Below the pieces are notes generated by a model, which saw nothing but the letters and a program-made list of their open reading frames with translations, was not told where the DNA came from and did no database searches. Below are positions 6,501 to 15,511 of a DNA stretch of 64,000 nt, piece by piece (positions within the stretch are counted from its first letter, which is position 1; each line of letters begins with the position of its first letter). The translations under genes and the position numbers were made by a program. The stretch lies in sequence record ON529858.1, one strand, 5' to 3'.

Positions 6501-6873
6501 CGACCAGTTGGCGATCAACGTGGCTGGCAACACGGGCGCCGCCTACCTTGAGGCCTACATCTGCCGCTGGGACGGTGAAGCGGCCGGCGAACCGATCGTC
6601 ACCGCCGGATTCCTGAGCCCCGGCGCCGGCGTGACCATCAAGCCGGTCTCGGGGACCCTTCAACCGGGCTGGCACGTCGCTGTCGTGACTGTCGCCGCTG
6701 TCGGCGTGCTGCAAATGGTCGTCCACCGCTCGCCGGTGTCCCTCAACGTCGACTTCACCCCCGCCGGCGACCCGTCGGGACCCGCCAACGCCCCCGGAGC
6801 GCCCCTGCTCCCGATCAACGGCCGAAACACCGGCTCCTGGGCGATTTTGTCTGCGAGATTCACCAATGGATGA
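535..6873 (+). CDS. Giant glycine-rich repeat protein (~2112 aa), putative head filament/appendage fibre
   Basis: Five ~260-aa Gly-rich modules (LWGGGG..GG, V..GDVIKVEVG.GG, GGWPDGG, GGGGGSTR.YKNGVL, GGSQTAGG, GGGGGYYGGG), then an I.LT.P repeat stalk and a C-terminal domain. ATG at 535; alternative TTG at 523. Confidence 0.85.
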   Translation: MPTTGVYSAAYTGAVETFVAEVDGGITFELWGGAGAGGSYGNTANTRANRRGGNGGFQKGLIPVVAGDVITVEVGQGGRKPTAFSPTVGGGPGGWPDGGAGGTSTTATIALGGGGGSTRLYKNGVLMAIAGAGGGGTGYYFGGSGGGALGSTDGYNTAQAAENGANSTGGSQTAGGTTGGASLKGADSPSPATAIATASAGGGGGYFGGGRSSTSGAHGGGGGGSNFAAEAVLNYESRIALTAADTISTLPPVSANAPAGTGMGGVSATTIAGIANGGDGYARLAFTASARTMGPTDVLSLPPIANDQVITVTAAGVLQLKLWGAGGAGGSYSGSTVTARRGGPGAFTNVYLRVAAGDVLRIKVGAPGQKGMHDSTPIRGGSAAYPDGGWSNRSAANTVILFGGGGGSTQVFKNNVLVAVAAGGGGCTGFYAGGAGGADTGQVGMDAVAANGTGGTQSAGGLSGGGYLQGGNSGANTASQTNGGSGGGGGYYGGGANRGAAGAHGAGGGGSSFLDTVQALAPSQRVGGNNTTFLAPVDADKPAGVGDGGLSTVRYDTVTHGGPGYAKISYIDELTTLGDVRTINFTGEAKSFYCSTSGVIDFKSWGAGGGGGISLVEAAGSRAGAGAHTKGLVPVEAGDVIKVEVGGGGKRVVDLATQAMGGWPDGGTGARGANSGAENYAGGGGGGSTRVYKNGVLIAVAGAGGGGDRGAAGSGGALVGYDGRNSGGGVASTGGSQTAGGSLAGGFLQGGNSVHNTSLGGGGGGGGYYGGGASGQAVCPGGGGSSWFNGSYVIAGSRLGGNSGNTGEAGGSNDVHYPGAPIAQGGLTQRASAGALTDGGNGYVRLELKDESAIGSAPLPVAADGTEKTVTVTTSGVMSVVLWGGGGGGSKLFNGSAPLTGAGAGFTKINFGVVPGDVIKFSVGLGGKRGVNAGGTTGGGGLGGWPDGGAGGAPGNADFGCAGGGGGSRVYKNGVLMGVAGGGGGSGGYSPRGEAGAGGGATGGDGPHANAGTGGSQTAGGFNKTAPSNVAYQGAALQGGKGSPGVATTPSAGAGGGGGGGYFGGGGGGFDSGSGGIYPGGGGGSGYINTLAGATGTTTAGTGTGGAAAGTSDPLYPGGGEGVGGVGDVSVMTNVKDGGNGAITYYVTPTTGGDIGTVTLTSPTGTALRQGAEVRYDFSGAAQTVVVPATGTAVVKAWAGGGGGGYNQKGAATNGAGASGGFITAQLQVDAGDVIKVEVGGGGLGGRTSAALGGWPDGGSGQYGGASGSEQYGGGGGGGSTRVYVNDVLQLVAGAAGGGFGPQAATPGIGWAGPGGGLTGGDGRGAYGVFSRGGTQIAGGNNGFDGPGSALQGGSVTTSAGGGGGGGWFGGSGGANASGVTGGAGGGGGSSWAGGSRVIPGSVTTLSGSIDAGPAGGSTDSKYQSPVGKGGLNRSTAPSDAGSPGQVHIYFDGLAPANASGATGGTISLTVPTVSTGVPANAVAPTQAIALTAPAGGVLVGLPRGPVGTITFFGDLTGEATILASATPAIPGLELRAELGGQGTIEAVTLVPLTDNDLAWTSVISATLVGEVDYKNTGVSIIRLTPPRFYLPGVAPGDPFDNDLVFNAPQGFGQEGVDVYAAFSSVIALTAPGGDPHAGALARNNLPAWSAGAPGPYTAAISLQPLLGATAGGDALAANVTPVILDLTPPGVVASGITIDAPAVFDSLIYLTAPTGTGEQGVQADADFDSVIALTPPVGDPHVIGYASADFAFRTITLTRPLHIVEGNAYLNITADPPFVRITPPQALTTYGASVLATILPAQIRLRAASAIASEGNIALAVGGLEDVPLLFTPLDGIGTMQPEVRFDPLHFHTVDGYVENGDDTQGPLRFKRSRDEGAVPTLSDGEIALNEADGVLFSRNGAGNVRQTPYGALQMGGFAPEGGVSGHILAADRSWKPATARFDRPIRLSPALGALVPLSNDPVGVETRVLPNTRTHYHPFFVPKQVGVDQLAINVAGNTGAAYLEAYICRWDGEAAGEPIVTAGFLSPGAGVTIKPVSGTLQPGWHVAVVTVAAVGVLQMVVHRSPVSLNVDFTPAGDPSGPANAPGAPLLPINGRNTGSWAILSARFTNG

Positions 6874-7489: not shown

Positions 7490-8268
7490 TGCCTTTGAAG
7501 AACGCACGATCCGACACGCCTGGAGCCCGCGCCAACCTCCTTCCGGGCGAAGTCAAGCACCAACGCGCCGACGATCTTCTGCTGATCCGGGGCAACGGCA
7601 ATCGCAAGCTGGAGATCGACCTGGAGCGCTGGCGCAGCGACGCCGCCCCGGCTGACGGCGTCTCGGGCGCCCCTCTGCTGCGCTCCGGTTCCGGTGTGTC
7701 CTGGGATGCGTCCCTGGCGCCGTCGTGCGAGGTGAACGGCCACACCACCGTCGACGCCGCGCCCGCCGCCTACGGTGTTCCGGGCCTGATGATCACCGGC
7801 CTAGGGACGCCCCTCGACGTGCAGTCCGGGCGCGTCCTGGTCGAGACCTTCTACCTCGCCTCCGACACCATCCACGTCGTGGACCTCGCCATCAACGTCA
7901 CCGAGAACCCCGGCCCGCCGGTCCGGTTCGGTCTGGTCGACTCCACGGGAGAGATCATCTTCGAACAGCGGCTGTCCAACACCGTGCTCGGCCGCAACGC
8001 CGTCGCCGTGAACATGGACATCACCTACGGCACCTACCACCTGATGATCTGGTGCGGGTCTTCCTTCCAGATGTCGCAGGTCCAGGGCGTGCGGATCGAG
8101 CAGGGCATGACGTTCGATGAGCGCACCCCGCAGTTCCTGCGCCGGCGCCAGACGGCCTCGCCCATGGGGACGGCCCTCGCCTACCACGGGATCGAGTTCA
8201 ACGACGTGCTCTCGGCGACGCCTGGAGAGGACCACGCTATCCTCATGTCGTGGGAACTGACGACCTAA
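7489..8268 (+). CDS. Hypothetical virion-associated protein (259 aa), third copy of the same module
   Basis: TGATG coupling; LLPGEVKHQRADDLLLIR and GVSGAPLLRSGSGVSW resemble motifs in the giant protein C-terminus. Confidence 0.7.
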   Translation: MPLKNARSDTPGARANLLPGEVKHQRADDLLLIRGNGNRKLEIDLERWRSDAAPADGVSGAPLLRSGSGVSWDASLAPSCEVNGHTTVDAAPAAYGVPGLMITGLGTPLDVQSGRVLVETFYLASDTIHVVDLAINVTENPGPPVRFGLVDSTGEIIFEQRLSNTVLGRNAVAVNMDITYGTYHLMIWCGSSFQMSQVQGVRIEQGMTFDERTPQFLRRRQTASPMGTALAYHGIEFNDVLSATPGEDHAILMSWELTT

Positions 8269-8334: not shown

Positions 8335-8703
8335 ATGTCCAATCGCGTCCGCATCTATTCGCCGCTTACCAACGAGCCCTTCGACGTCACCGAAGCGCGC
8401 GCCACGAAGCTGCGTCTGGATCACGGCTGGCTCAGCCAGCCCTACACCGAGACCGGTGACGCGACCGACCTGGGAACCGGGATCGGCGAAGACACCGGAG
8501 TCGTCGACTCCGTCGTCCGTGTGCCCGATTCCGAGAACACGGTGATCGACTGGCGTGACATGGAACAGGTGCAGACCTCGGACGGCCCCGGCCTCCCGGA
8601 TCACACCGAGTCCGAAACGCCGCCGGAAACGGACGTCGAGGAAGAGCCGGCCGCCAAGGGCCGAGGTCGCGGGCGGAAGTCCGCTGAGACCGCCGAGGAC
8701 TAA
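8335..8703 (+). CDS. Hypothetical acidic protein (122 aa)
   Basis: Directly downstream of a promoter; phage-like codon usage; low-complexity acidic C-terminus. Confidence 0.7.
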   Translation: MSNRVRIYSPLTNEPFDVTEARATKLRLDHGWLSQPYTETGDATDLGTGIGEDTGVVDSVVRVPDSENTVIDWRDMEQVQTSDGPGLPDHTESETPPETDVEEEPAAKGRGRGRKSAETAED

Positions 8704-8787
8704 ACCCCTCCTGCGGTGCTCGGCGCCGCTTCTGCACAATCCGACCTTTTCTTTCACCGGCGCGCGGGGCGCGCCTGGAGTCTGACC

Positions 8788-9300
8788 ATGCTCGTTATCA
8801 ATCTCATCGCTGGCCCTGGCGCCGGCAAGAGCACGTCCGCCGGTATCCTGTTCGGGCTGATGAAGATGGCGAATGAGAAGGTCGAACTGGTCCAGGAATA
8901 CGCCAAGGACAAGACCTACGAACAAGACTGGACGGCGCTGGACAACCAGTTTATGTGCGCCGCCCAGCAGGATCAGAGGCTTCGGCGCCTTCTCGGGCAT
9001 GTCGACTTCTGCATCAACGACTCGGCGCTCCCCCTGGGGCTCGCCTACGCCAAGGCTCCGTTCGACAAGCCCTGGTTCACCGACGCTGTCTGGGGTCTCT
9101 ACGACACCTACAGCAACTTCAACGTCTTCATCGAGCGGGTGAAGCCGTTCCAGCAATACGGCCGCGCCCACAACGAGGCGGAGAGCCGGGAGAAGGACGA
9201 AGAACTGAAGGCCATCTTCGCGGGCCGTATCAATCTGACCGTGCCGGGCGACGCCGCCGCCGGGGCAGTGATATACGAAGCGATCAAGAGATTGTCCTAG
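8788..9300 (+). CDS. P-loop NTPase, AAA_28/NadR-type kinase-like (170 aa)
   Basis: GGAG RBS, ATG at 8788; N-terminal VINLIAGPGAGKST Walker A, followed by VELVQEYAKD. Confidence 0.75.
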   Translation: MLVINLIAGPGAGKSTSAGILFGLMKMANEKVELVQEYAKDKTYEQDWTALDNQFMCAAQQDQRLRRLLGHVDFCINDSALPLGLAYAKAPFDKPWFTDAVWGLYDTYSNFNVFIERVKPFQQYGRAHNEAESREKDEELKAIFAGRINLTVPGDAAAGAVIYEAIKRLS

Positions 9301-9320
9301 CCCTCGGGCCGGGACCACAT

Positions 9321-9408
9321 GCGGGTCTGCTGGAGTGGACGAACAGGGCGGTCTCCAAAACCGCTAGGCGAAAGCCTCACAGGGGTTCGAATCCTCTGGC
9401 CCGTGCCA
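9321..9408 (+). tRNA. tRNA-Trp(CCA) with long variable arm
   Basis: Acceptor GCGGGTC/GGCCCGT, G73, CCA; anticodon arm GCGGT-CTCCAAA-ACCGC; variable arm AGGC-GAAA-GCCT. Confidence 0.85.
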
Positions 9409-9415
9409 AAATAAT

Positions 9416-9489
9416 GCGGCCGTAGCCAAGCGGTAAGGCACCGGATTTCCACTCCGGCAGCGCGGGTTCGATCCCCGCTGGCCGCTCCA
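9416..9489 (+). tRNA. tRNA-Gly(TCC)
   Basis: CCGGA-TTTCCAC-TCCGG anticodon arm; GGTTCGAT T-loop; TCCA end. Confidence 0.92.
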
Positions 9490-9616
9490 TCTACACTGAG
9501 GCCAGCCGGGCATTTCATCCTCCGGCTGGGGTAACGAAAAGGCAGTAGCCGGGGTTGTGCCGGCGAACCCGCCCAGAGGCTGGACCTGGGCTCCCTCGGA
9601 CGACGTGCCTACCGAC

Positions 9617-9692
9617 GCGACCATCGTATCATTGGTGAATACACTGCGTTGCCAACGCGGGGAGGGGAGTTCGATTCTCCCTGGTCGCTCCA
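9617..9692 (+). tRNA. tRNA-Gly(GCC)
   Basis: Acceptor GCGACCA/TGGTCGC; CTGCG-TTGCCAA-CGCGG; TCCA end. Confidence 0.9.
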
Positions 9693-9702
9693 TTTTCAAA
9701 AA

Positions 9703-9746
9703 TCTACGTCAAAGTTCTTGACGTAGAGATCAACCGAGTATATAAG
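9703..9746 (+). promoter_or_regulatory. Promoter for the Glu/Asp tRNA block
   Basis: TCTACGTC-N9-GACGTAGA inverted repeat; TTGACG(9718)-N17-TATAAG(9741). Predicted start site coincides with ATG 9754 (leaderless mRNA). Confidence 0.8.
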
Positions 9747-9753
9747 CCATCCT

Positions 9754-9819
9754 ATGACGCACTTCCTGACCATTCGAGAGAGCGAGACCCACACGGGTCG
9801 AGATACGCGCGCCGCCTAG
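9754..9819 (+). CDS. Candidate leader peptide 1 (MTHFLTIRESETHTGRDTRAA, 21 aa)
   Basis: ATG ~7 nt after the -10 box; stop lies in the loop of a long hairpin that ends at TTTT just before tRNA-Glu. Confidence 0.5.
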   Translation: MTHFLTIRESETHTGRDTRAA

Positions 9820-9853
9820 ACAGCGGCACTCGTAGTCGACGGCCCGTGCTTTT

Positions 9854-9932
9854 GGAGCCGTCTTCTAAATGGACTAGGAAAACAGCCTTTCAAGCTGCTG
9901 AATGCGGGTTCGATCCCCGTCGGCTCTACCAA
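9854..9932 (+). tRNA. tRNA-Glu(TTC), irregular anticodon arm
   Basis: Acceptor GGAGCCG/CGGCTCT; CAGC-CTTTTCAA-GCTG gives an 8-nt loop or a bulged stem; ACCA end. Confidence 0.8.
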
Positions 9933-9963
9933 AGCACTCTACGAAAACGCTGCTCATCTTTAT

Positions 9964-10038
9964 GGTGCGCTCTTCTATCGGTTAAGAACACCCGTTGTCT
10001 GCGGGAAAAGCGGGGTTCGATTCCCCGGCGCATCGCCA
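9964..10038 (+). tRNA. tRNA-Asp(GTC)
   Basis: Acceptor GGTGCGC/GCGCATC; CCCG-TTGTCTG-CGGG; GCCA end. Confidence 0.88.
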
Positions 10039-10179
10039 CCTTTTTCGTGCCTACCCTCACTTTTGTTCTTGACGAACGTCGTCAATCGTGAGACACGTCG
10101 ATCCAACAACACCGGTCACGCCTCTCTTCGATGCGCCTCAGATCGGTTTCTCCTTTCATCCTTCGCAGGAACCTTCATC

Positions 10180-10308
10180 GTGACCACCCTGTCGCACAAG
10201 CTGAGCCTGAAGAGCGCCCCGTCGGCGTTGCTTTCGCTCGCCCATGCGCCGGCCACGCTGAAGTCCACCCCCGCCACCGTGGCGTCCACCTCGGAGACCT
10301 TCTCGTAA
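10180..10308 (+). CDS. Leader peptide 2 (42 aa; Thr/Leu/Ser/His/Lys/Ala/Pro sensor)
   Basis: AGGA RBS at 10167, GTG start; MTTLSHKLSLKSAPSALLSLAHAPATLKSTPATVASTSETFS. Residues 2-33 all belong to the 7 amino acids of the downstream tRNA block. Confidence 0.8.
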   Translation: MTTLSHKLSLKSAPSALLSLAHAPATLKSTPATVASTSETFS

Positions 10309-10374
10309 GGTCTCAGCAGGTGGCGCCCCCTGGGGCCTCACCTGCGAAATGCTTCCCAAGCACCCAGCAGTTGT

Positions 10375-10408
10375 AGGTCCCAGGCGCCAGCCTCGGGGCC
10401 TTTTTCTT
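10375..10408 (+). terminator. Intrinsic terminator (attenuator) upstream of tRNA block 2
   Basis: AGGTCCCAGG-CGCCAG-CCT(C)GGGGCCT followed by TTTTCTT. The 5' arm can alternatively pair with CCTGGGGCCT at 10329-10338. Confidence 0.75.
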
Positions 10409-10420
10409 GTCCAAAATCAA

Positions 10421-10497
10421 CGGTGTTTAGCGCAGTCTGGTAGCGCACTCGGTCCGGAACCGAGGGGTCGCAGGTTCAAATCCTGCAACGCCGACCA
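10421..10497 (+). tRNA. tRNA-Pro(CGG)
   Basis: CTCGG-TCCGGAA-CCGAG (C33, A37); C1-G72, A73, CCA. Confidence 0.88.
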
Positions 10498-10505
10498 TCC
10501 ATCAT

Positions 10506-10580
10506 CTGGGTCTGGCCGAACGGTTAGGCACCTCGTTTGGGGCGAGGACTATGCGGGTTCGAGCCCTGCGGCCCAGACCA
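10506..10580 (+). tRNA. tRNA-Pro(TGG)
   Basis: CCTCG-TTTGGGG-CGAGG; acceptor CTGGGTC/GGCCCAG; ACCA end. Confidence 0.9.
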
Positions 10581-10588
10581 TCTTCAAC

Positions 10589-10665
10589 CGGTGTTTAGCG
10601 CAGTCTGGTAGCGCACTTGCTCGGGAAGCAAGGGGTCGCAGGTTCAAATCCTGCAACGCCGACCA
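10589..10665 (+). tRNA. tRNA-Pro(GGG)
   Basis: CTTGC-TCGGGAA-GCAAG; otherwise identical to 10421-10497 (duplication with a different anticodon arm). Confidence 0.88.
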
Positions 10666-10671
10666 ACAAAT

Positions 10672-10744
10672 GCCATGGCCTCGGGATTGGGGCCGGCCCC
10701 TTGGTATGGGGAAGAGCAGGGTTCGAGTCCCTGCCATGGCTCCA
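10672..10744 (+). tRNA. tRNA-Thr(GGT)
   Basis: Acceptor GCCATGG/CCATGGC; CCCC-TTGGTAT-GGGG; TCCA end. Confidence 0.82.
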
Positions 10745-10752
10745 AGTTTCAT

Positions 10753-10823
10753 GCCTGCGCCTCGTGGGAGGTCGGCCCTTTCGTAGTGGGCCAGCGAGGG
10801 TTCGACACCGTCCGCAGGCTCCA
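10753..10823 (+). tRNA. tRNA-Thr(CGT), compact D arm
   Basis: Acceptor GCCTGCG/CGCAGGC; GCCCT-TTCGTAG-TGGGC; same G1-C72, C2-G71, U73 as the adjacent Thr tRNA. Confidence 0.72.
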
Positions 10824-10893
10824 TCATCAACCAACGAGCCTGAGAGGCAGGCAGCGATCTTAGCCCACACACCGGCGGATCGCAACAAGATAC

Positions 10894-10982
10894 GGACGTG
10901 TAAACCCCTAGCGGCGATGGGTGCGGGCTCTTAATCCGCTGTCGAAAGACCACCGTGAGTTCGAGTCTCACCACGTTCTCCA
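10894..10982 (+). tRNA. tRNA-Lys(CTT) with long variable arm
   Basis: Acceptor GGACGTG/CACGTTC; GCGGG-CTCTTAA-TCCGC; variable arm GTC-GAAA-GAC; U73. Confidence 0.82.
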
Positions 10983-10984
10983 TC

Positions 10985-11053
10985 ATGTTCCCGATCGGGA
11001 TCATCTCGTGCCGGCGCCGTCGAAAGCGCCCCGGATGTTCCCGATCGGGATCA
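10985..11053 (+). repeat. 19-bp direct repeat ATGTTCCCGATCGGGATCA, two copies, each with a 12-bp palindrome
   Basis: Exact copies at 10985-11003 and 11035-11053. Confidence 0.85.
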
Positions 11054-11063
11054 CACAGATCAT

Positions 11064-11148
11064 CCCGGTCTGGCGAAGTAGTAGACGCGCTGTCCTCAGA
11101 AGGCAGTGTCCTTGTGACGGGAGGGTGCGAGTCCCTCGACCGGGACCA
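11064..11148 (+). tRNA. tRNA-Leu(CAG)
   Basis: CTGTC-CTCAGAA-GGCAG; long variable arm; T-loop TGCGAGT; A73. Confidence 0.87.
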
Positions 11149-11156
11149 ACATCTCT

Positions 11157-11242
11157 GCCCGACTGGTCGGAATCGGTAGACGCAGCGACCTCAAAAGTCG
11201 TGGCCTTCGGGCGTCCCGGTTCAAGTCCGGGGTCGGGCACCA
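11157..11242 (+). tRNA. tRNA-Leu(CAA)
   Basis: GCGAC-CTCAAAA-GTCGT; long variable arm; ACCA end. Confidence 0.92.
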
Positions 11243-11250
11243 AACCTCAT

Positions 11251-11335
11251 CCTGGGGTGACGAAGCTGGTAGACGTGGCGGTCTGAGAGGCCGCTGTCGA
11301 AAGACGGGCGGGTTCGAATCCCGCTCCCAGGACCA
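11251..11335 (+). tRNA. tRNA-Leu(GAG)
   Basis: GCGGT-CTGAGAG-GCCGC; long variable arm; ACCA end. Confidence 0.9.
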
Positions 11336-11346
11336 AGGGTTTCTAT

Positions 11347-11419
11347 GCTGTCAGGCGCTTGGTGCGCAGGCTGGGTTGTGTCCCCGGTCGGTTGGGTTCG
11401 AAACCTAATGACAGTGCCA
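11347..11419 (+). tRNA. tRNA-His(GTG), no encoded G-1
   Basis: Acceptor GCTGTCA/TGACAGT; CTGGG-TTGTGTC-CCCGG. Absence of G-1 is an established trait of tRNA-His in several alphaproteobacterial orders including Caulobacterales. Confidence 0.78.
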
Positions 11420-11425
11420 TTTCAT

Positions 11426-11499
11426 GGGGTTGGGGCTTGGGTCCCAGGTTCGTTTTGCAAACCTACCGTGTCGGGTTCGAATCCCGATGACTCCACCAA
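11426..11499 (+). tRNA. tRNA-Ala(TGC), irregular anticodon stem
   Basis: Acceptor GGGGTTG/TGACTCC gives G3:U70 and A73 (Ala identity); loop TTTGCAA closed by GT/AC within a mismatched stem. Confidence 0.65.
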
Positions 11500-11564
11500 C
11501 ACGGCGCCGGGCACGGCGCCACCGTTCGCTGACATCGCGAGATGTTCGCGATCGACGACATCAT

Positions 11565-11654
11565 GGAAGGCTGGCTGAGTCCGGTTTAAGGCACCGGTTT
11601 CGAAAACCGGCGGACCGAAAGGTCCCGTGGGTTCGAATCCCACGCCTTCCTCCA
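11565..11654 (+). tRNA. tRNA-Ser(CGA)
   Basis: CCGGT-TTCGAAA-ACCGG; long variable arm GGACC-GAAA-GGTCC; U73. Confidence 0.9.
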
Positions 11655-11660
11655 CATCAT

Positions 11661-11750
11661 GGTAGGCTGGCTGAGTCTGGCTGAAGGCACCCGCCCGGAA
11701 AGCGGACAGACCGCAAGGTCTCCAGGGTTCAAATCCCTGGCCTACCTCCA
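11661..11750 (+). tRNA. tRNA-Ser(GGA)
   Basis: CCGC-CCGGAAA-GCGG (C33); long variable arm; U73. Confidence 0.87.
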
Positions 11751-11883
11751 AGCTGGGTCCCAGCACCGACGGCGCCCTTCAAGCGCCGGGTCTGCTGGGG
11801 GCAAGAGCCCGAGCCGTTGCTGACACCCCTATCGTGTGGGGACGTAAGGCACACGAGGCCGGCGGGCTGCGCCCTTGTATCAC

Positions 11884-11970
11884 GGATGGTGAACCCTGGG
11901 CGGCCAGGGCGCCGGTTGCTAACCGAACGGAGCCGCAAGGCCTGGGGTTCGAGTCCTCCGCCATCCGCCA
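11884..11970 (+). tRNA. tRNA-Ser(GCT)
   Basis: Acceptor GGATGGT/GCCATCC; loop TTGCTAA; long variable arm; GCCA followed by a T-tract. Confidence 0.85.
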
Positions 11971-11986
11971 CTTTTTTCGCAACAAT

Positions 11987-12029
11987 CTACGTCGCGGATG
12001 TTGACGCCCGCCGGGCGCTCTGGCATCAA
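11987..12029 (+). promoter_or_regulatory. Promoter motif upstream of candidate ncRNA and def
   Basis: ACGTC-GCGGATGTT-GACGC with TTGACG at 12001-12006; the -10 box is weak. Confidence 0.55.
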
Positions 12030-12435
12030 GGTCCCAGGTCGAAGCGGCCGGCAGGTTTCACCTCCCACCGCCCAGCGAGACCTCAGTGTGGAGTTCTTGG
12101 TTGCCTCTCCCGAACAAGGGCGACCACAAAATCACGGTCCGTCCGGGGGTCACCGGACGGGGTAACTCGACGGGTTGATCCTCCGGCTGAGCCACCCGAC
12201 TACCGCGTGCGCTCAGACAGGTCCTGGGTCGCAGAGTCCTAGCCCTGTCCCCTGCTGCTAGGCTGGGGTTCAATGGAACCAGGGCCGTTCTGAGCGCACG
12301 CGGTTCAATAGCTTCGGCAGAGCATGAGGGTGGATTGGGGCCGTGACTCCCCGGTCCGGCGCCGTCACGGGCGCACATGCGCTCCGCCCGCAGTGGTGGA
12401 GAGAACCCGGTTCGAGTCCGGGGCCGAGGACCGCA
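12030..12435 (+). ncRNA. Candidate ~400-nt structured ncRNA ending in a tRNA-like T arm
   Basis: Perfect 16-bp helix 12202-12217/12289-12304; several hairpins; CCCGG-TTCGAGT-CCGGG at 12406-12422; no convincing ORF. Confidence 0.55.
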
Positions 12436-12449
12436 CAGGAGAAGACCCG

Positions 12450-13001
12450 TTGATACGCCCGATCGTCTCTTGCACCGATCCCTTCCTCCGCATCCCGTCC
12501 GTCGAGATCGCCACGATCACCCAGGACGTCCGCGACCTCGCCCGCGATCTGGTCGAGACCGCCCTGCACCATGAGGCCGCCGGCATCGCCGCGCCCCAGG
12601 TCGGCGCCGGCCTGCGCATGGTCTGCTACATCGACGTCCCCGGCGCCACGAACCTGCCCCAGGTCCACCTCAAGCAGTTCTGGAAGCCGACGATCCTGAT
12701 TAACCCCGTGATCTCCAAGGCCTCCGAGGCGATGATCGAGTGGGATGAGGGATGCCTGTCGATGCCGGGCTCCTACTTCCCCGTCAGCCGCCACCGCCTG
12801 ATCGACGTCAGCTACACCGACCTCAACGGCGAGACCCAGACCATCACCGACGCCGGCGGCTACAAGGCCATCTGCCTCCAGCACGAGATCGACCACCTCG
12901 ACGGCATCTTGAACATCGACCGCATCGTCGGCCCGCTCAAGAAGGCTATGATCATGACCTCCTGGCGCAAGGCCCAGCGCCGCGCCCAGCGGGCCGCCTG
13001 A
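12450..13001 (+). CDS. def: Peptide deformylase (183 aa)
   Basis: AGGAG RBS with TTG start; motifs GIAAPQVG, EGCLS and QHEIDHLDG (HEXXH). Confidence 0.95.
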   Translation: MIRPIVSCTDPFLRIPSVEIATITQDVRDLARDLVETALHHEAAGIAAPQVGAGLRMVCYIDVPGATNLPQVHLKQFWKPTILINPVISKASEAMIEWDEGCLSMPGSYFPVSRHRLIDVSYTDLNGETQTITDAGGYKAICLQHEIDHLDGILNIDRIVGPLKKAMIMTSWRKAQRRAQRAA

Positions 13002-13017
13002 AACTTTTTCTGAAAAA

Positions 13018-13060
13018 GTTCGTCGTTGTTCTTGACGAACCGATCCACTTAGTGTAGACA
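13018..13060 (+). promoter_or_regulatory. Promoter for tRNA block 3
   Basis: GTTCGTC-N9-GACGAAC perfect inverted repeat; TTGACG(13032)-N17-TAGACA(13055). Predicted start site at ATG 13068 (leaderless). Confidence 0.8.
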
Positions 13061-13067
13061 TCGCTTC

Positions 13068-13163
13068 ATGACCTCCTATCGCCAAAACGTGCAGAACATT
13101 CGAGTCGTCCGGTTTAACCGGACGGGCCGTTCGCATGTGCGTGATAGTGGGACCCAGATTTAG
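13068..13163 (+). CDS. Leader peptide 3 (31 aa; Tyr/Arg/Gln/Asn/Val/Ile/Phe sensor)
   Basis: MTSYRQNVQNIRVVRFNRTGRSHVRDSGTQI; residues 4-18 all belong to the 7 amino acids of the downstream tRNA block. Confidence 0.82.
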   Translation: MTSYRQNVQNIRVVRFNRTGRSHVRDSGTQI

Positions 13164-13195
13164 GGTCGTAGACCCCACCCTCCACCGCTTCGAAT

Positions 13196-13230
13196 GGCCC
13201 GTCTGGTAACCCAGGCGGGCCTTTTCTTTT
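13196..13230 (+). terminator. Intrinsic terminator (attenuator) upstream of tRNA block 3
   Basis: GGCCCGTCTGG-TAAC-CCAGGCGGGCC followed by TTTTCTTTT. The 5' arm is complementary over 11 bp to CCGGACGGGCC (13118-13128) inside the leader ORF. Confidence 0.85.
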
Positions 13231-13266
13231 GTCCAAAATCCTCAAGGAAAACATCAAGATCACCCT

Positions 13267-13349
13267 GGGTGGTGAAAGTCAGTTGGCTCTGACAGCGGTC
13301 TGTAACACCGCGCCGCAAGGGAGGGGTTCGATGCCCTCACCACCCACCA
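13267..13349 (+). tRNA. tRNA-Tyr(GTA)
   Basis: GCGGT-CTGTAAC-ACCGC; acceptor GGGTGGT/ACCACCC; ACCA end. Confidence 0.85.
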
Positions 13350-13350
13350 C

Positions 13351-13425
13351 CGTTCCATAGCTGAGATAGAATAGCGCGGGCTTGAAAACCCCGAGACGGA
13401 GATGCGAACGCTCCTGGGACGGCCA
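13351..13425 (+). tRNA. tRNA-Phe(GAA)
   Basis: Loop TTGAAAA; acceptor CGTTCCA/TGGGACG; atypical T-loop TGCGAAC and G73. Confidence 0.75.
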
Positions 13426-13441
13426 ACATTTCGAACTTCGA

Positions 13442-13516
13442 AGCGCTTTAGCCAAGTAGAAAGGCACGGCTGTGACATGGCCGCACGCGCTGGTGCGATT
13501 CCAGCAAGCGCTACCA
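13442..13516 (+). tRNA. tRNA-Val(GAC)
   Basis: CGGCT-GTGACAT-GGCCG; acceptor AGCGCTT/AAGCGCT; T-loop TGCGATT. Confidence 0.85.
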
Positions 13517-13521
13517 AGTTT

Positions 13522-13595
13522 TCTCTCGTAGCATAAAAGTGATGCGAGCGGCTGATAACCGCTAGAAGAAGGTGCGATACCTTCCGGGAGGACCA
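13522..13595 (+). tRNA. tRNA-Ile(GAT)
   Basis: AGCGG-CTGATAA-CCGCT; T-loop TGCGATA; ACCA end. Confidence 0.87.
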
Positions 13596-13661
13596 AATCG
13601 GCCGGGGATGCTTCCCCGGCCCTCATCAACGCTTAGATCGAAAGGTCAACGACTAAACCAC

Positions 13662-13736
13662 AGCGTGTTAGGCAAGTAGAAATCCGGGGGTGTCACATAC
13701 CTCTATGCGAGGGTGCGATTCCTTCACACGCTACCA
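13662..13736 (+). tRNA. tRNA-Val(CAC)
   Basis: GGGGT-GTCACAT-ACCTC; acceptor AGCGTGT/ACACGCT. Confidence 0.83.
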
Positions 13737-13751
13737 ACTATACTTCTGTGA

Positions 13752-13829
13752 TGCCGGGTGGCGGAACTGGTAGACGCAGCACGCTTTGAACGTGTATAAC
13801 TGTGGGTTCGAGTCCTACGCCGGCAGCCA
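13752..13829 (+). tRNA. tRNA-Gln(TTG)
   Basis: GCACG-CTTTGAA-CGTGT; U1-A72, G73. Confidence 0.85.
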
Positions 13830-13884
13830 GAAGTATCGACGAAGTCTAGTCCGCTCTAAGGACTGAAGATCGTGAGGGTTTTGT

Positions 13885-13970
13885 TTGCTCGTGGCGGAAG
13901 CGGGTAGACGTGCCGGACTGTTAATCCGGGGCCGAAAGGCGTGCAGGTTCGAGGCCTGCCGGGCAAGCCA
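13885..13970 (+). tRNA. tRNA-Asn(GTT) with long variable arm
   Basis: CCGGA-CTGTTAA-TCCGG; variable arm GCC-GAAA-GGC; GCCA end. Confidence 0.85.
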
Positions 13971-13988
13971 AACCCTCATCAAGATCAC

Positions 13989-14071
13989 GTCGCTCTAACC
14001 GGGCCGGTCTACGAAACCGGTCGCCGTAGCTGGAGTTGAAAAGGGTGGTTCGAGTCCACTGAGCGACGCCA
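13989..14071 (+). tRNA. Atypical tRNA-Arg(ACG): no D arm, 23-nt variable region
   Basis: Acceptor GTCGCTC/GAGCGAC; CCGGT-CTACGAA-ACCGG; canonical T arm; GCCA end. Confidence 0.65.
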
Positions 14072-14090
14072 TACTTTCGAGCCGACCAAC

Positions 14091-14165
14091 GCGCCCAGGT
14101 GGTCCAGTTAGTGGGCGCCGGGCAGTCTACCCGGAGGGTGCGGCGAACATCCGCTCACGGGCGCA
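14091..14165 (+). pseudogene. tRNA-like cloverleaf without a T-loop consensus or CCA (Asp-like GTC loop)
   Basis: GCGCCC/GGGCGC terminal helix; GTCC/GGGC arm; CCGGG-CAGTCTA-CCCGG; GCGG-CGAACAT-CCGC; abuts the next tRNA. Confidence 0.4.
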
Positions 14166-14265
14166 GTCCCGGCTCGATCCACGTCTCGGTAACCGGTCCG
14201 GCTTCCGAAGCCGGGAGCCGTAGCTGGAGTTGAGAAGGGTGGTTCGAACCCACTCCGGGACGCCA
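14166..14265 (+). tRNA. Atypical tRNA-Arg(CCG), 100 nt
   Basis: Acceptor GTCCCGG/CCGGGAC; CCGGC-TTCCGAA-GCCGG; shares the variable segment GCCGTAGCTGGAGTTGA with Arg(ACG). Confidence 0.65.
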
Positions 14266-14272
14266 TCAACAT

Positions 14273-14347
14273 GCCGGCGACGCCTATTGGATGGGCGCCC
14301 GCCTTCTAAGCGGTCCTGGGTAGGTTCGAGTCCTTCCGCCGGCGCCA
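14273..14347 (+). tRNA. tRNA-Arg(TCT)
   Basis: CCGC-CTTCTAA-GCGG; acceptor GCCGGCG/CGCCGGC; GCCA end. Confidence 0.88.
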
Positions 14348-14384
14348 TAGTTCTTGACGCCGACCGCGTCACCCTCCATACATC

Positions 14385-14767
14385 TGCCAGGGCCTGTTCC
14401 TGGGCCTGGACTACGGAATGCGGGGACCTTTCGCGAGGGCGCCTTGGCGGACCGAAACCAGCAGATCGAACGCGGCTCGCCGTGGAGGTCTGAGGGAAAT
14501 CCGAAACCAGGGCCTTCCATCTCACCGACGACAACCTGGGGCATACGCCGGGTCGAGACGGGACACGGGCCGGTGCCGCTATGGACGGCCCCCGAAGGAA
14601 GCGACGACCGTGCCGCGTCGCCCTGCGCGGTCGTCACTATTCTAGCGGCCCGTCCTTGAGAAAGACGGGGTTGAGAGGCACGGAACGCGGTTCACCCCCG
14701 CCGCCCAAGGCAGACGGATCGGAAATGCAGCCACGCTACGGCCGATCCCCGCTCTCATATTTTTTTT
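14385..14767 (+). ncRNA. Candidate ~380-nt structured ncRNA
   Basis: Preceded by TTGACG-N17-CATACA; long-range helix 14441-14450/14701-14711 with internal hairpins; ends at a T8 tract; no credible ORF. Confidence 0.5.
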
Positions 14768-14778
14768 GACGCTACCCG

Positions 14779-14928
14779 TTGACAAGGTCCGGGTAGGGTT
14801 CTACAACCCCATTCGTGAGCACGGCAATACCACGGGCGCCCGCCAATCGGGTGAGGTAACGCTGGTCTCCTTTCATCCGTCGTCAGATGCACCCCGTCGG
14901 TCCCGTCCGGCGGGGTGTTTCGCTATTT
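14779..14928 (+). ncRNA. Candidate small RNA with its own promoter and terminator
   Basis: TTGACA(14779)-N17-TACAAC(14802); anti-Shine-Dalgarno-like TCTCCTTT at 14866; hairpin GCACCCCGTCGG/CCGGCGGGGTGT at 14889-14918 followed by T-rich sequence. Confidence 0.5.
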
Positions 14929-15038
14929 GGATGAACCGCTTACAACAGCACTCGTCAACGTCGTGAATCTTGACTTTCGCAGTGCGGTGTGCCAGGGTGC
15001 GGCTCACATCAACTGCTCAGAAGACGGGGTCCCAGAGC

Positions 15039-15428
15039 ATGTCGCAAGACAACCTCCAAGGATTCCCGGCGTCGCCCGGCGATCCGCTTATTGTCCGGAT
15101 GCTCGCTGAGATGCAGAGTTCGCAAACCCGCACGCGGGAAGATACGATCGAGATCAAGGGCGCCGTCAAGTCGATGTCCGAGGCGGTCACCCGCGTTGAG
15201 AAGCGCCAGGAGGCTTTCGAGAAGGAAGTTGACCAGCGGATCGAATCGGAGCACCGCAAGAACAACGCCAAGATGGTCGAGATCGCCCGCGAGGTGAAGA
15301 CGATCCGGGAAGAGCGCATCGCTGAGAAGGCTCAGTGGCGCGGCCCGGAAAAGGTCATCGGCATTCTGGTTCTGGTTGCGTCGGCGCTTGGCGCCATTGT
15401 GGCAATCAAGGCCTTCTTTTTCCCTTAA
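15039..15428 (+). CDS. Coiled-coil protein with C-terminal transmembrane helix (129 aa; holin/XhlA-like shape)
   Basis: Heptad-rich middle region; hydrophobic VIGILVLVASALGAIVAIKAFFF tail. Confidence 0.65.
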   Translation: MSQDNLQGFPASPGDPLIVRMLAEMQSSQTRTREDTIEIKGAVKSMSEAVTRVEKRQEAFEKEVDQRIESEHRKNNAKMVEIAREVKTIREERIAEKAQWRGPEKVIGILVLVASALGAIVAIKAFFFP

Positions 15429-15511
15429 TCGGACGTCGTCGATGTTGACGCTCTCACCCAAACGGGTTAACCACGGTCTAACAGTGGGGCTCCGGTTGGA
15501 GGGGAACAGAT

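Follow-up and report, generated by a model that had tools for sequence, protein, structure and literature searches.

A short leader in front of a tRNA operon of Brevundimonas phage vB_BgoS-Bajun, here called leader 3, is probably a ribosome-mediated transcription attenuator, in which the reading of a 31-codon ORF would gate the expression of the phage tRNA genes. The window, which is the whole stretch of DNA analysed, is a 64 kb part of record ON529858.1, and a position in the window equals the position in the record minus 124000. Bajun is a phiCbK-like phage of the subfamily Dolichocephalovirinae, and the leader 3 unit was located between the peptide deformylase gene (def, 12324-13001) and a tRNA run at 13267-14347. 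The parts of the unit, their conservation, the alternative pairings and the match between codons and tRNAs were obtained by computation. The features are listed below.

13032..13037, + strand: -35 hexamer TTGACG, part of the recurring motif TTCTTGAC, with TTGAC invariant in 17 relatives
13055..13060, + strand: -10 hexamer TAGACA, 17 nt 3' of the -35 hexamer and 7 nt 5' of ATG 13068
13068..13163, + strand: leader ORF, 31 codons plus TAG, probably leaderless, with an invariant ATG, 3-nt indels and a fixed stop column
13072..13097, + strand: 5' arm of the outer helix, pairing with 13128-13151 in the terminated conformer (Bajun MFE fold)
13077..13121, + strand: sensor run, codons 4-18, YRQNVQNIRVVRFNR, composed solely of amino acids of the downstream tRNAs
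13105..13113, + strand: segment 1, 5' arm of the anti-antiterminator, inside the ORF, pairing with 13117-13125
13117..13133, + strand: segment 2, of which 13117-13125 can pair with segment 1, or 13118-13133 with segment 3
13163..13175, + strand: small hairpin, starting on the last base of the stop codon
13191..13206, + strand: segment 3, with 13196-13206 as the terminator 5' arm and 13191-13206 as the antiterminator 3' arm
13211..13221, + strand: segment 4, 3' arm of the terminator, in an 11-bp stem with 9 G-C pairs
13222..13231, + strand: U-tract TTTTCTTTTG, directly 3' of the terminator stem
13267..14347, + strand: candidate regulated tRNA block with Tyr, Phe, Val(GAC), Ile, Val(CAC), Gln, Asn, Arg(CCG), Arg(CCG)-like and Arg(TCT), from ARAGORN and Rfam

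In blastn, all other sequenced members of the subfamily had a match of roughly 70% identity to the stretch from about 13047 to 13235. This stretch was always located directly 5' of the Val-Ile-Val-Gln tRNA block, whatever gene was found further upstream, and in the records of the relatives it was left unannotated or was given just as a terminator or a hypothetical protein. The assignment of the terminator to the upstream def gene was considered and rejected, since the unit stays beside the tRNA block and the upstream gene varies among the relatives. For comparison, 17 distinct versions of the leader 3 unit were aligned. Only already known phages were matched when IMG/VR was scanned with the pattern ATTC..GRCGGGCC..GGCCCG, and the scan of metagenomes with the same pattern gave chance matches only, so that no members were found beyond the cultured Dolichocephalovirinae.

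Within the tRNA block (block 3), ARAGORN called Tyr, Val(GAC), Ile, Val(CAC), Gln(TTG), Asn, Arg(CCG) and Arg(TCT), and a tRNA-Phe(GAA) at 13351-13425 was called by Rfam and, at relaxed thresholds, by ARAGORN. The preliminary description of this DNA had matched codons of the leader to individual isoacceptors; Val(CAC), Val(GAC), Arg(CCG) and Gln(TTG) were indeed present downstream among the ARAGORN calls, and the match of CGC and CGA to Arg(ACG) had to be dropped, as no tRNA-Arg(ACG) was found in Bajun. This tRNA was found in PW, Colossus, SC, BL9 and RB23. In the 35-nt gap between the terminator and tRNA-Tyr, no promoter-like sequence was seen by reading. The possibility that the leader is a degenerate tRNA or a trans-acting sRNA was also rejected, as it had no ARAGORN or Rfam support and would leave the frame unexplained.

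The promoter TTGACG-N17-TAGACA was read as previously described, with 7 nt to ATG 13068, and was kept in the relatives, where the spacer was 17 nt, or 18 nt in SC and BL9. Its motif TTCTTGAC was present in 10 copies in the window compared with 1.08 expected, and four of these copies, at 9715, 10066, 13029 and 14351, headed units of the tRNA region. In a promoter scan with the E. coli consensus, the leader 3 promoter was not listed and its -10 hexamer was weak by that consensus; given this miss, the promoter was accepted because of its conservation among the relatives. The -35 hexamer sits within an inverted repeat, which is a possible regulator site.

The distance from the -10 hexamer to the ATG was 7 nt in 19/19 elements, those of the phages Lacusarx and L02 included, and in the same 19 elements the start codon was always ATG and a Shine-Dalgarno-like sequence was absent. 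An invariant 7-nt spacing without a Shine-Dalgarno-like sequence is what a leaderless mRNA requires, and the mRNA of leader 3 is probably leaderless, a reading that was taken solely from this spacing. In the MFE fold of leader 3 the first 4 nt were unpaired, and transcription has to proceed by another 60-84 nt before the pairing partner of nt 5-30 is made. To our knowledge, no leaderless mRNA has been described as the sensor ORF of an attenuator, and leader 3 would provide a natural example of such an ORF if the model is true. In Caulobacter, 375 leaderless mRNAs were reported, with translation as good as that of leadered ones (PMC4117421). Leader 3 resembles the leaderless mRNAs of Caulobacter in its AUG start, in the lack of a Shine-Dalgarno sequence and of a 5' extension, and in the fixed distance from promoter to AUG (PMC4117421, PMC8459731); it differs in that its start position was predicted from sequence only.

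The leader 3 ORF (13068-13163, predicted product MTSYRQNVQNIRVVRFNRTGRSHVRDSGTQI) behaves as a translated frame across the 17 relatives, as judged from its pattern of variation. The ATG was identical in 17/17 sequences, the two indels within the ORF were of 3 nt each, and the indels 3' of the stop were of 1, 2 or 4 nt. The stop codon occupied a single alignment column in 17/17, though it was TAG, TAA or TGA and the codons before it varied. Frame 0 was free of stops in all 17 sequences, and stops were present in the other frames. Synonymous variation among the relatives was detected for Tyr (TAT/TAC), Arg (CGC/CGT) and Asp (GAT/GAC).

The composition of this frame follows the tRNA block. It was confirmed by reading that the 31-codon ORF uses only amino acids of block 3 in codons 4-18, namely Y, R, Q, N, V, I and F, and that 20/30 residues after Met in the whole ORF belong to this set; after codon 18 the residues are mostly out of set. 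The run of 15 residues was the longest of the seven-amino-acid set in the six frames of the 64 kb, and the runners-up were poly-Arg runs of 12 and 9. Among the relatives, the 15 aligned sensor codons were fully in set in 14/17 sequences, and 13/16 of the alternative residue states fell within the seven amino acids. The probability of 13/16 was about 2e-6 when compared with single-nucleotide nonsynonymous neighbours, 24% of which are in set, and about 6e-5 with the six-frame background frequency of 0.31, the 16 states not being strictly independent events in either calculation. Many of the changes in the sensor were chemically radical and took 2-3 nucleotide substitutions (Asn/Phe, Val/Arg, Asn/Ile/Tyr/Phe). 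Rare codons were used in the sensor, with shares in the long ORFs of the phage of 7% of Ile for ATT, 5% for CGA and 4% for TTT, and the ATT codon was invariant in 17/17; TAT and CAA had shares of 27% each. By this comparison of sequences, the codon match is selected and not accidental.

It is very improbable that the ORF is an ordinary small-protein gene, or the transcript a stable small RNA, whose position and composition are coincidental and behind which the tRNAs are expressed by leaky readthrough. A hypothetical protein was annotated here by some depositors (Kabachok, S2L and RBC57), and Gly20, Ser22 and Asp26 were conserved outside the sensor run, as would be expected of such a gene, but these residues are encoded by the invariant core of segment 2 and the TTCG extension of the RNA helix. 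No PHROGs family was found for leader 3 or for leader 2, a second leader of Bajun, and the changes at residues 4-18 are radical (N to F, V to R, N to I) and yet remain within the set defined by the tRNAs. A second function in trans is possible alongside attenuation, and peTrpL and rnTrpL are precedents for it (PMC7298713, PMC6614838).

The RNA from the ATG to the U-tract had a predicted folding energy of -69.1 kcal/mol (z = -4.06 compared with shuffled sequences), and the RNAalifold consensus consisted of helix 1:2, the outer helix (the part pairing GTGC with GCAY) and the terminator. The predicted pairing of segment 1 with segment 2 was recovered at 13105-13113 with 13117-13125, and helix 1:2 was 93.5% paired in the alignment of 17, where 3 of its pairs had changed on both sides. 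The 3:4 terminator after the leader was likewise found where it had been proposed, with a stem of 13196-13206 and 13211-13221 followed by TTTTCTTTTG; helix 3:4 was 98.9% paired in the 17 sequences, with 4 pairs changed on both sides. In the terminated state, 1:2 plus 3:4, 96.5% of cells were paired with 7 both-side changes, compared with 30-59% in slid controls, and the core of helix 2:3 was 97.9% paired with 3 both-side changes, compared with 24-55% in slid controls. The preliminary description had given this alternative 2:3 pairing a length of 11 bp; the covarying pairing held and the length did not, as 16 contiguous bp (13118-13133 with 13191-13206) were found in Bajun. It had also let the sensor run stop where segment 2 begins, which needed correction, as the run covers segment 1 and the loop and ends 4 nt into segment 2.

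The changes in segments 1, 2, 3 and 4 were linked within lineages. Most phages carried CCGG/CCGG/CCTGG/CCAGG, PW carried CCAG/CTGG/CCAGG/CCTGG, Colossus was similar with CTTGG in segment 2, and SC and BL9 carried TCCGA/TCGGA/TCCGA/TCGGA. The extension of helix 2:3, TTCG/CGAA, was found in all sequences, with a compensatory CTCG/CGAG in the Swift clade. When everything up to segment 1 was removed as a stand-in for a stalled ribosome, 2:3 was paired in 17/17 at -49 to -56 kcal/mol, and with segment 4 present it was kept in the MFE structure in 12/17. The U-tract was conserved in most relatives; it was weaker in RB23 and BL47, in which the terminator was degenerate, a point against the attenuator reading. 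By reading, the stop codon was located in or beside a hairpin loop in the relatives, in leader 2 and in leader A of phage L02. A covarying 2:3 pairing has no role in a plain gene, which also speaks against the small-protein reading.

Strong conservation and covariation of the RNA structure would also suit a switch that is run by a phage or host protein, or by T-box-like direct binding of tRNA, and in which the open frame is incidental. About 29% of shuffled sequences of the same composition were free of stops across 30 codons, and the inverted repeat at the -35 hexamer could bind a regulator. Such a switch is nevertheless quite unlikely, since an incidental frame leaves the invariant spacing of the ATG, the 3-nt indels and the conserved stop position unexplained, and since in three phage groups, whose sets differ, the composition tracks that of the tRNA block behind it. 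Moreover, in an Rfam scan of 8500-15500 with E up to 1, no + strand family, T-box or other, was matched at the leader 3 element (13000-13260).

Based on these parts, a ribosome-mediated attenuator would work as follows; we infer where transcription starts, that the ORF is translated, that ribosome and polymerase are coupled, and which way the system responds. Host RNA polymerase would start at or beside the A of ATG 13068 and give a leaderless transcript, on which a 70S ribosome would begin the 31-codon leader while the polymerase is still transcribing. Codons 4-18, several of them rare, would be read by the tRNA species that are encoded downstream. When decoding is fast, the ribosome would pass segments 1 and 2 and reach the stop codon in the interval before segment 3, segment 2 would be covered or re-paired with segment 1, the 3:4 terminator would form, and transcription would end at about 13231 with a leader RNA of about 160 nt. 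When decoding is slow at any sensor codon, the ribosome would lag on or before segment 1, covering segment 1 and the outer helix and leaving segment 2 free; the emerging segment 3 would then pair with segment 2 in the 16-bp antiterminator, no terminator would form, and transcription would continue into the tRNA genes from tRNA-Tyr onwards. On an RNA without a ribosome, segment 1 and the beginning of the ORF would be paired with segment 2 and the sequence beside it, and the terminator would form; this would be the default off state. The net result would be a negative feedback on the supply of exactly those tRNAs. In the literature, no published mapped 5' ends, ribosome footprints or termination assays were found for these phages.

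Two features of leader 3 do not suit the simple form of this attenuator. The in-set codons 14-18 are located on segment 1, the loop and segment 2, where a stall should favour termination, and these codons may be set partly by constraints of RNA structure. The ORF also runs 13 codons past segment 2, unlike that of trpL, and over this tail the ribosome might mask segment 2 or the spacer. The same parts could obey another logic, in which the passage of the ribosome allows expression of the tRNAs (a translation-competence checkpoint or a positive feedback), or in which RNA processing or stability is controlled. This is unlikely, although an ORF that crosses segment 2 and ends in the hairpin between segments 2 and 3 is not the layout of trpL, and although the ORF of leader 2 stops just before a hairpin, which a terminating ribosome could open. 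Set against it are the position of segment 1 inside the sensor run and the formation of 2:3 once segment 1 is masked, which is the classical geometry in which a stall gives readthrough, as well as the canonical terminator immediately before the first tRNA; a positive feedback on tRNA supply would also be physiologically less sensible than homeostasis.

Leaders with matching composition were found at other tRNA blocks and in other phages. Leader 2 of Bajun (ORF 10180-10308, VTTLSHKLSLKSAPSALLSLAHAPATLKSTPATVASTSETFS), downstream of the TTCTTGAC copy at 10066, is followed by a terminator-like hairpin and then by the tRNAs Pro, Thr, Lys, Leu, His, Ala and Ser. Its in-set run of 32 residues was the longest for its set in the window, its ORF ends just 5' of the first downstream hairpin, and it was kept in Gurke and Bambus, and as gp083 in phiCbK. 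Leader 1 of Bajun (9755-9820, MTHFLTIRESETHTGRDTRAA), before Glu and Asp, showed no enrichment, with 2 Glu and 1 Asp in 21 residues, a result that does not suit the attenuator reading. In Sphingobium phage Lacusarx, which like phage L02 lies outside the subfamily and has its tRNAs sorted into other blocks than Bajun, the leader MFTQTTLLTQCHYWQLLSSSSL has the promoter TTGACA-17-TATCAT-7-ATG, the same geometry as leader 3 of Bajun; it precedes Ser, Tyr, Leu, Thr, His, Gln, Cys and Trp, and its run of 20 compared with a next-best run of 11 in 118 kb. A second leader of this phage, containing RFGKRDRREGERGF, precedes Lys, Gly, Asp, Glu, Arg and Phe. These two matching leaders were designated B and C, and at the first tRNA block of Lacusarx no clean matching ORF was found, which also speaks against the reading.

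In Erythrobacter phage L02, matched leaders (A, B and C) were found at all three tRNA blocks, with MFNVIAMNNPAPAIMVPVAMACVEGTRD before Pro, Met, Val, Ile, Ala and Asn, MTFGRTKRDRREGDERGFTS before Lys, Gly, Asp, Glu, Arg and Phe, and MFTQTALHLLTQTTLCWQCQYSSLSPF before Ser, Tyr, Leu, Thr, His, Gln, Cys and Trp. Leader A of L02 has a 1:2 hairpin in its ORF, a 2:3 alternative with the terminator 5' arm, and its stop codon in the hairpin loop. Sinorhizobium phage Phosso was left out of the comparison, its tRNA region being mixed with CDSs and its amino-acid sets being too large to inform. In a cross-table of leaders and blocks, 7/8 leaders had a longest in-set run of 12-32 when scored with the set of their own block, and of no more than 7 with the set of any other. 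Phe and Arg are grouped with Val, Ile and Gln in Bajun and with Lys, Gly and Asp in L02, and Tyr and Gln move the opposite way; the leaders follow the amino acids that are reshuffled between blocks, which works as a natural swap experiment. For an ordinary small-protein gene, the coincidence of composition would need repeating in 7/8 leaders.

With regard to the wider group, on the whole we lean towards the view that in the Dolichocephalovirinae, Lacusarxvirus and the L02 lineage, and perhaps in other tRNA-rich phages, tRNA sub-operons are each metered by a leader that spells out its block and that, as a codon-resolved sensor, would raise transcription on slow decoding of any one of the codons. 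This would be the first attenuation of tRNA genes and would act as a detector of host tRNA depletion, with the leaders co-evolving with their blocks.

Transcription attenuators with leader peptides are represented by trpL, hisL and the multi-amino-acid ilvL and thrL of enterobacteria, and in pheM-pheST of E. coli a leader peptide rich in cognate codons attenuates tRNA synthetase genes. The elements of an attenuator found in leader 3 were a promoter-proximal ORF, an enrichment of cognate codons, a terminator before the first tRNA, and 2:3 pairing that excludes 1:2 and 3:4. At the level of sequence, the attenuator model of the preliminary description is supported, each part of it that computation could test having passed. 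Leader 3 would work like the amino-acid leaders of Rfam (Trp, His, Leu, Thr and Phe) but belongs to none of them. It shares with trpL, hisL, ilvL and thrL a short ORF right after the promoter with dense regulatory codons, several of them rare, exclusive 1:2, 2:3 and 3:4 helices, and, ahead of the first structural gene, an intrinsic terminator; a peptide of about 32 residues would sense several different amino acids, which is also the case for ilvL. Differently from these leaders, it would control tRNAs and not biosynthetic enzymes, the product being the decoding agent, it is phage-borne and apparently leaderless, it would sense seven amino acids, and its ORF continues for 13 codons past segment 2 to end at a hairpin. 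The leader-peptide attenuators of amino-acid operons have been modelled previously (PMC1183508).

The likeness to pheM-pheST is the attenuation of a component of the translation apparatus through cognate codons, and the difference is that pheM-pheST is cellular and concerns a protein gene and one amino acid. In T-box elements, too, the supply of a specific tRNA is tied to the choice between antiterminator and terminator before translation-related genes, but the T-box binds uncharged tRNA through a specifier codon and the T-box bulge and uses no ribosome, whereas leader 3 has no T-box match and has a conserved frame. An alphaproteobacterial attenuator that depends on the ribosome, with a leader peptide and a small terminated RNA as its released products, is trpL of Sinorhizobium meliloti (PMC6614838, PMC7298713); it differs from leader 3 in that it senses Trp alone and controls trpE(G), and functions in trans were documented for rnTrpL and peTrpL.

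The mechanism itself is known from the trp, his and ilv leaders; its use on tRNA genes would be new, and no earlier description of it was found. Full-text searches of the literature gave no account of tRNA operons, in phages or in cells, that are controlled by a leader peptide or an attenuator. Control of tRNA and rRNA genes is in textbooks a matter of the promoter, by growth rate and the stringent response, and the attenuator, if true, would bring a new logic to tRNA genes, in which the speed of the ribosome is fed back directly to tRNA supply. In the phiCbK genome paper, terminators only were given and Rfam found nothing but tRNAs (PMC3556154).

The interest of leader 3 is high because the regulated product is the decoding agent and the pattern recurs in three phage lineages. 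If the model is true, the depletion of host tRNAs by shut-off, degradation or anticodon nucleases would be sensed. It has been proposed that phage tRNAs make up for host tRNAs that are lost in the course of infection (PMC10264068). This compensation view agrees with a sensor of slow decoding, which makes it testable with a simple reporter. The leaders would also be compact parts that report codon-specific translation capacity, and for annotation they suggest the rule that small ORFs should be sought whose composition mirrors the next tRNA block. Among the relatives, counts of the Asn, Gln or Ile codons of leader 3 showed no clear pattern when compared with the copy numbers of the respective tRNAs. 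The content of the tRNA block was nearly constant across the subfamily.

The second leader unit, that of leader 2, carried a TTCTTGAC promoter at its head, and roughly 100 nt of 5' UTR separated this promoter from the ORF. The residues P, T, K, L, H, A and S made up 38 of the 41 encoded by the ORF, and the tRNAs located downstream of the unit's terminator-like hairpin were Pro, Thr, Lys, Leu, His, Ala and Ser. The hairpin was followed by a T-run, was situated 3' of the ORF and ended near 10415. Leader 2 was kept in Gurke and Bambus, and its phiCbK counterpart was gp083.

Leader units in the window
10066-10420: leader 2 unit, TTCTTGAC promoter at its head
10180-10308: leader 2 ORF, GTG start, annotated as hypothetical BAJUN_02440
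9715-9853: leader 1 unit (third unit), TTGACG-17-TATAAG-7-ATG
9755-9820: leader 1 ORF, product MTHFLTIRESETHTGRDTRAA

Small unannotated ORFs were also found 5' of the tRNA blocks in Erythrobacter phage vB_EliS-L02 and Sphingobium phage Lacusarx. Their residue composition fitted their own downstream tRNA blocks, and their amino-acid sets were unlike those of Bajun.

Small unannotated ORFs 5' of tRNA blocks
L02 1892-2041: small ORF
L02 3483-3545: small ORF
L02 5014-5097: small ORF
Lacusarx 6665-6769: small ORF
Lacusarx 8037-8105: small ORF

Unlike the other blocks of Lacusarx, its first tRNA block (Pro, Met, Val, Ala, Asn and Ile) had no clean ORF upstream; in its place were a promoter-like site at about 4610 and a structured non-coding RNA stretch of about 270 nt. 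Between two tRNA blocks of the same phage lay a further ORF missing from the annotation (7635-7990, about 118 aa), the Cys/His pattern of which resembled that of an HNH endonuclease.

Leader 1 is the sole leader outside the pattern in which composition matches the block. Its ORF was followed by a long hairpin and TTTT, immediately 5' of tRNA-Glu and tRNA-Asp, and showed no enrichment for these tRNAs, with only two Glu and one Asp. Its spacing from promoter to ATG was that of the leaderless geometry of leader 3, and at its position phiCbK contained MTHLLTRYEREATGLDTTTA.

At all three leader promoters, the -35 hexamer formed one arm of an inverted repeat. These repeats could be sites for a dimeric regulator acting in addition to attenuation.

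Inverted repeats at leader promoters
13018-13040: GTTCGTC-N9-GACGAAC
9703-9727: TCTACGTCAA-N5-TTGACGTAGA
10069-10085: TTGACGA-N3-TCGTCAA

Leader 3, leader 2 and L02 leader A (the first of three matched leaders of that phage) each had a small hairpin whose loop or margin held the ORF stop codon. Leader 2, for example, carried GAGACC-TTCTCGTAA-GGTCTC, and Swift carried GGGAC-TAG-GTCCC. The arrangement was constant across lineages and the sequence was variable.

Small hairpins at leader stop codons
13161-13175: leader 3
10290-10312: leader 2
L02 1970-1990: leader A

In most relatives, a strong Shine-Dalgarno sequence, AGGAGATC, was present between the leader 3 terminator and tRNA-Tyr, accompanied by a mini-ORF of 4-5 codons 5' of tRNA-Tyr. 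This region comprised the 35-60 nt immediately 3' of the terminator (L002:1680-1710, and in L003, L005, L007 and L008, all records of relatives carrying leader 3). Translated, the mini-ORF of Gurke and Kabachok gave MTGGD*, that of Rogue, PW and Colossus gave MNNGG*, and that of RB23 gave MTGN*. Bajun retained AGATCACC alone at this position, without an ATG.

At 14351-15030, immediately 3' of the last tRNA, a fourth TTCTTGAC promoter motif headed a stretch of about 650 nt with terminator-like hairpins at its end. No annotated gene and no Rfam match were found in this stretch, which may represent a hitherto unrecognised non-coding RNA. Upstream of tRNA-Arg(CCG) at 12349-12432, the region 12003-12348 contained a promoter-like TTGACG-17-CATCAA and, 3' of it, a G+C-rich, structured-looking sequence about 340 nt long, in which neither an ORF nor an Rfam match was detected.

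Six tRNA genes in the window were absent from both the GenBank annotation and the default ARAGORN output, and several of them had unusual arms.

Unannotated tRNA genes
10753-10823: Thr(CGT)
10894-10982: Lys(CTT)
11426-11498: Ala(TGC)
11884-11970: Ser(GCT)
13351-13425: Phe(GAA)
14171-14265: Arg(CCG)-like, 95 nt

The anticodon loop of the Arg(CCG) tRNA at 13989-14071 (83 nt) displayed G33 and T37. With ARAGORN at default settings, the tRNA-Arg(CCG) at 12349-12432 fell within the annotated 5' end of def (12324-13001). Because def measured 678 nt in Bajun versus 543 nt in relatives, its annotated start is probably too far upstream.
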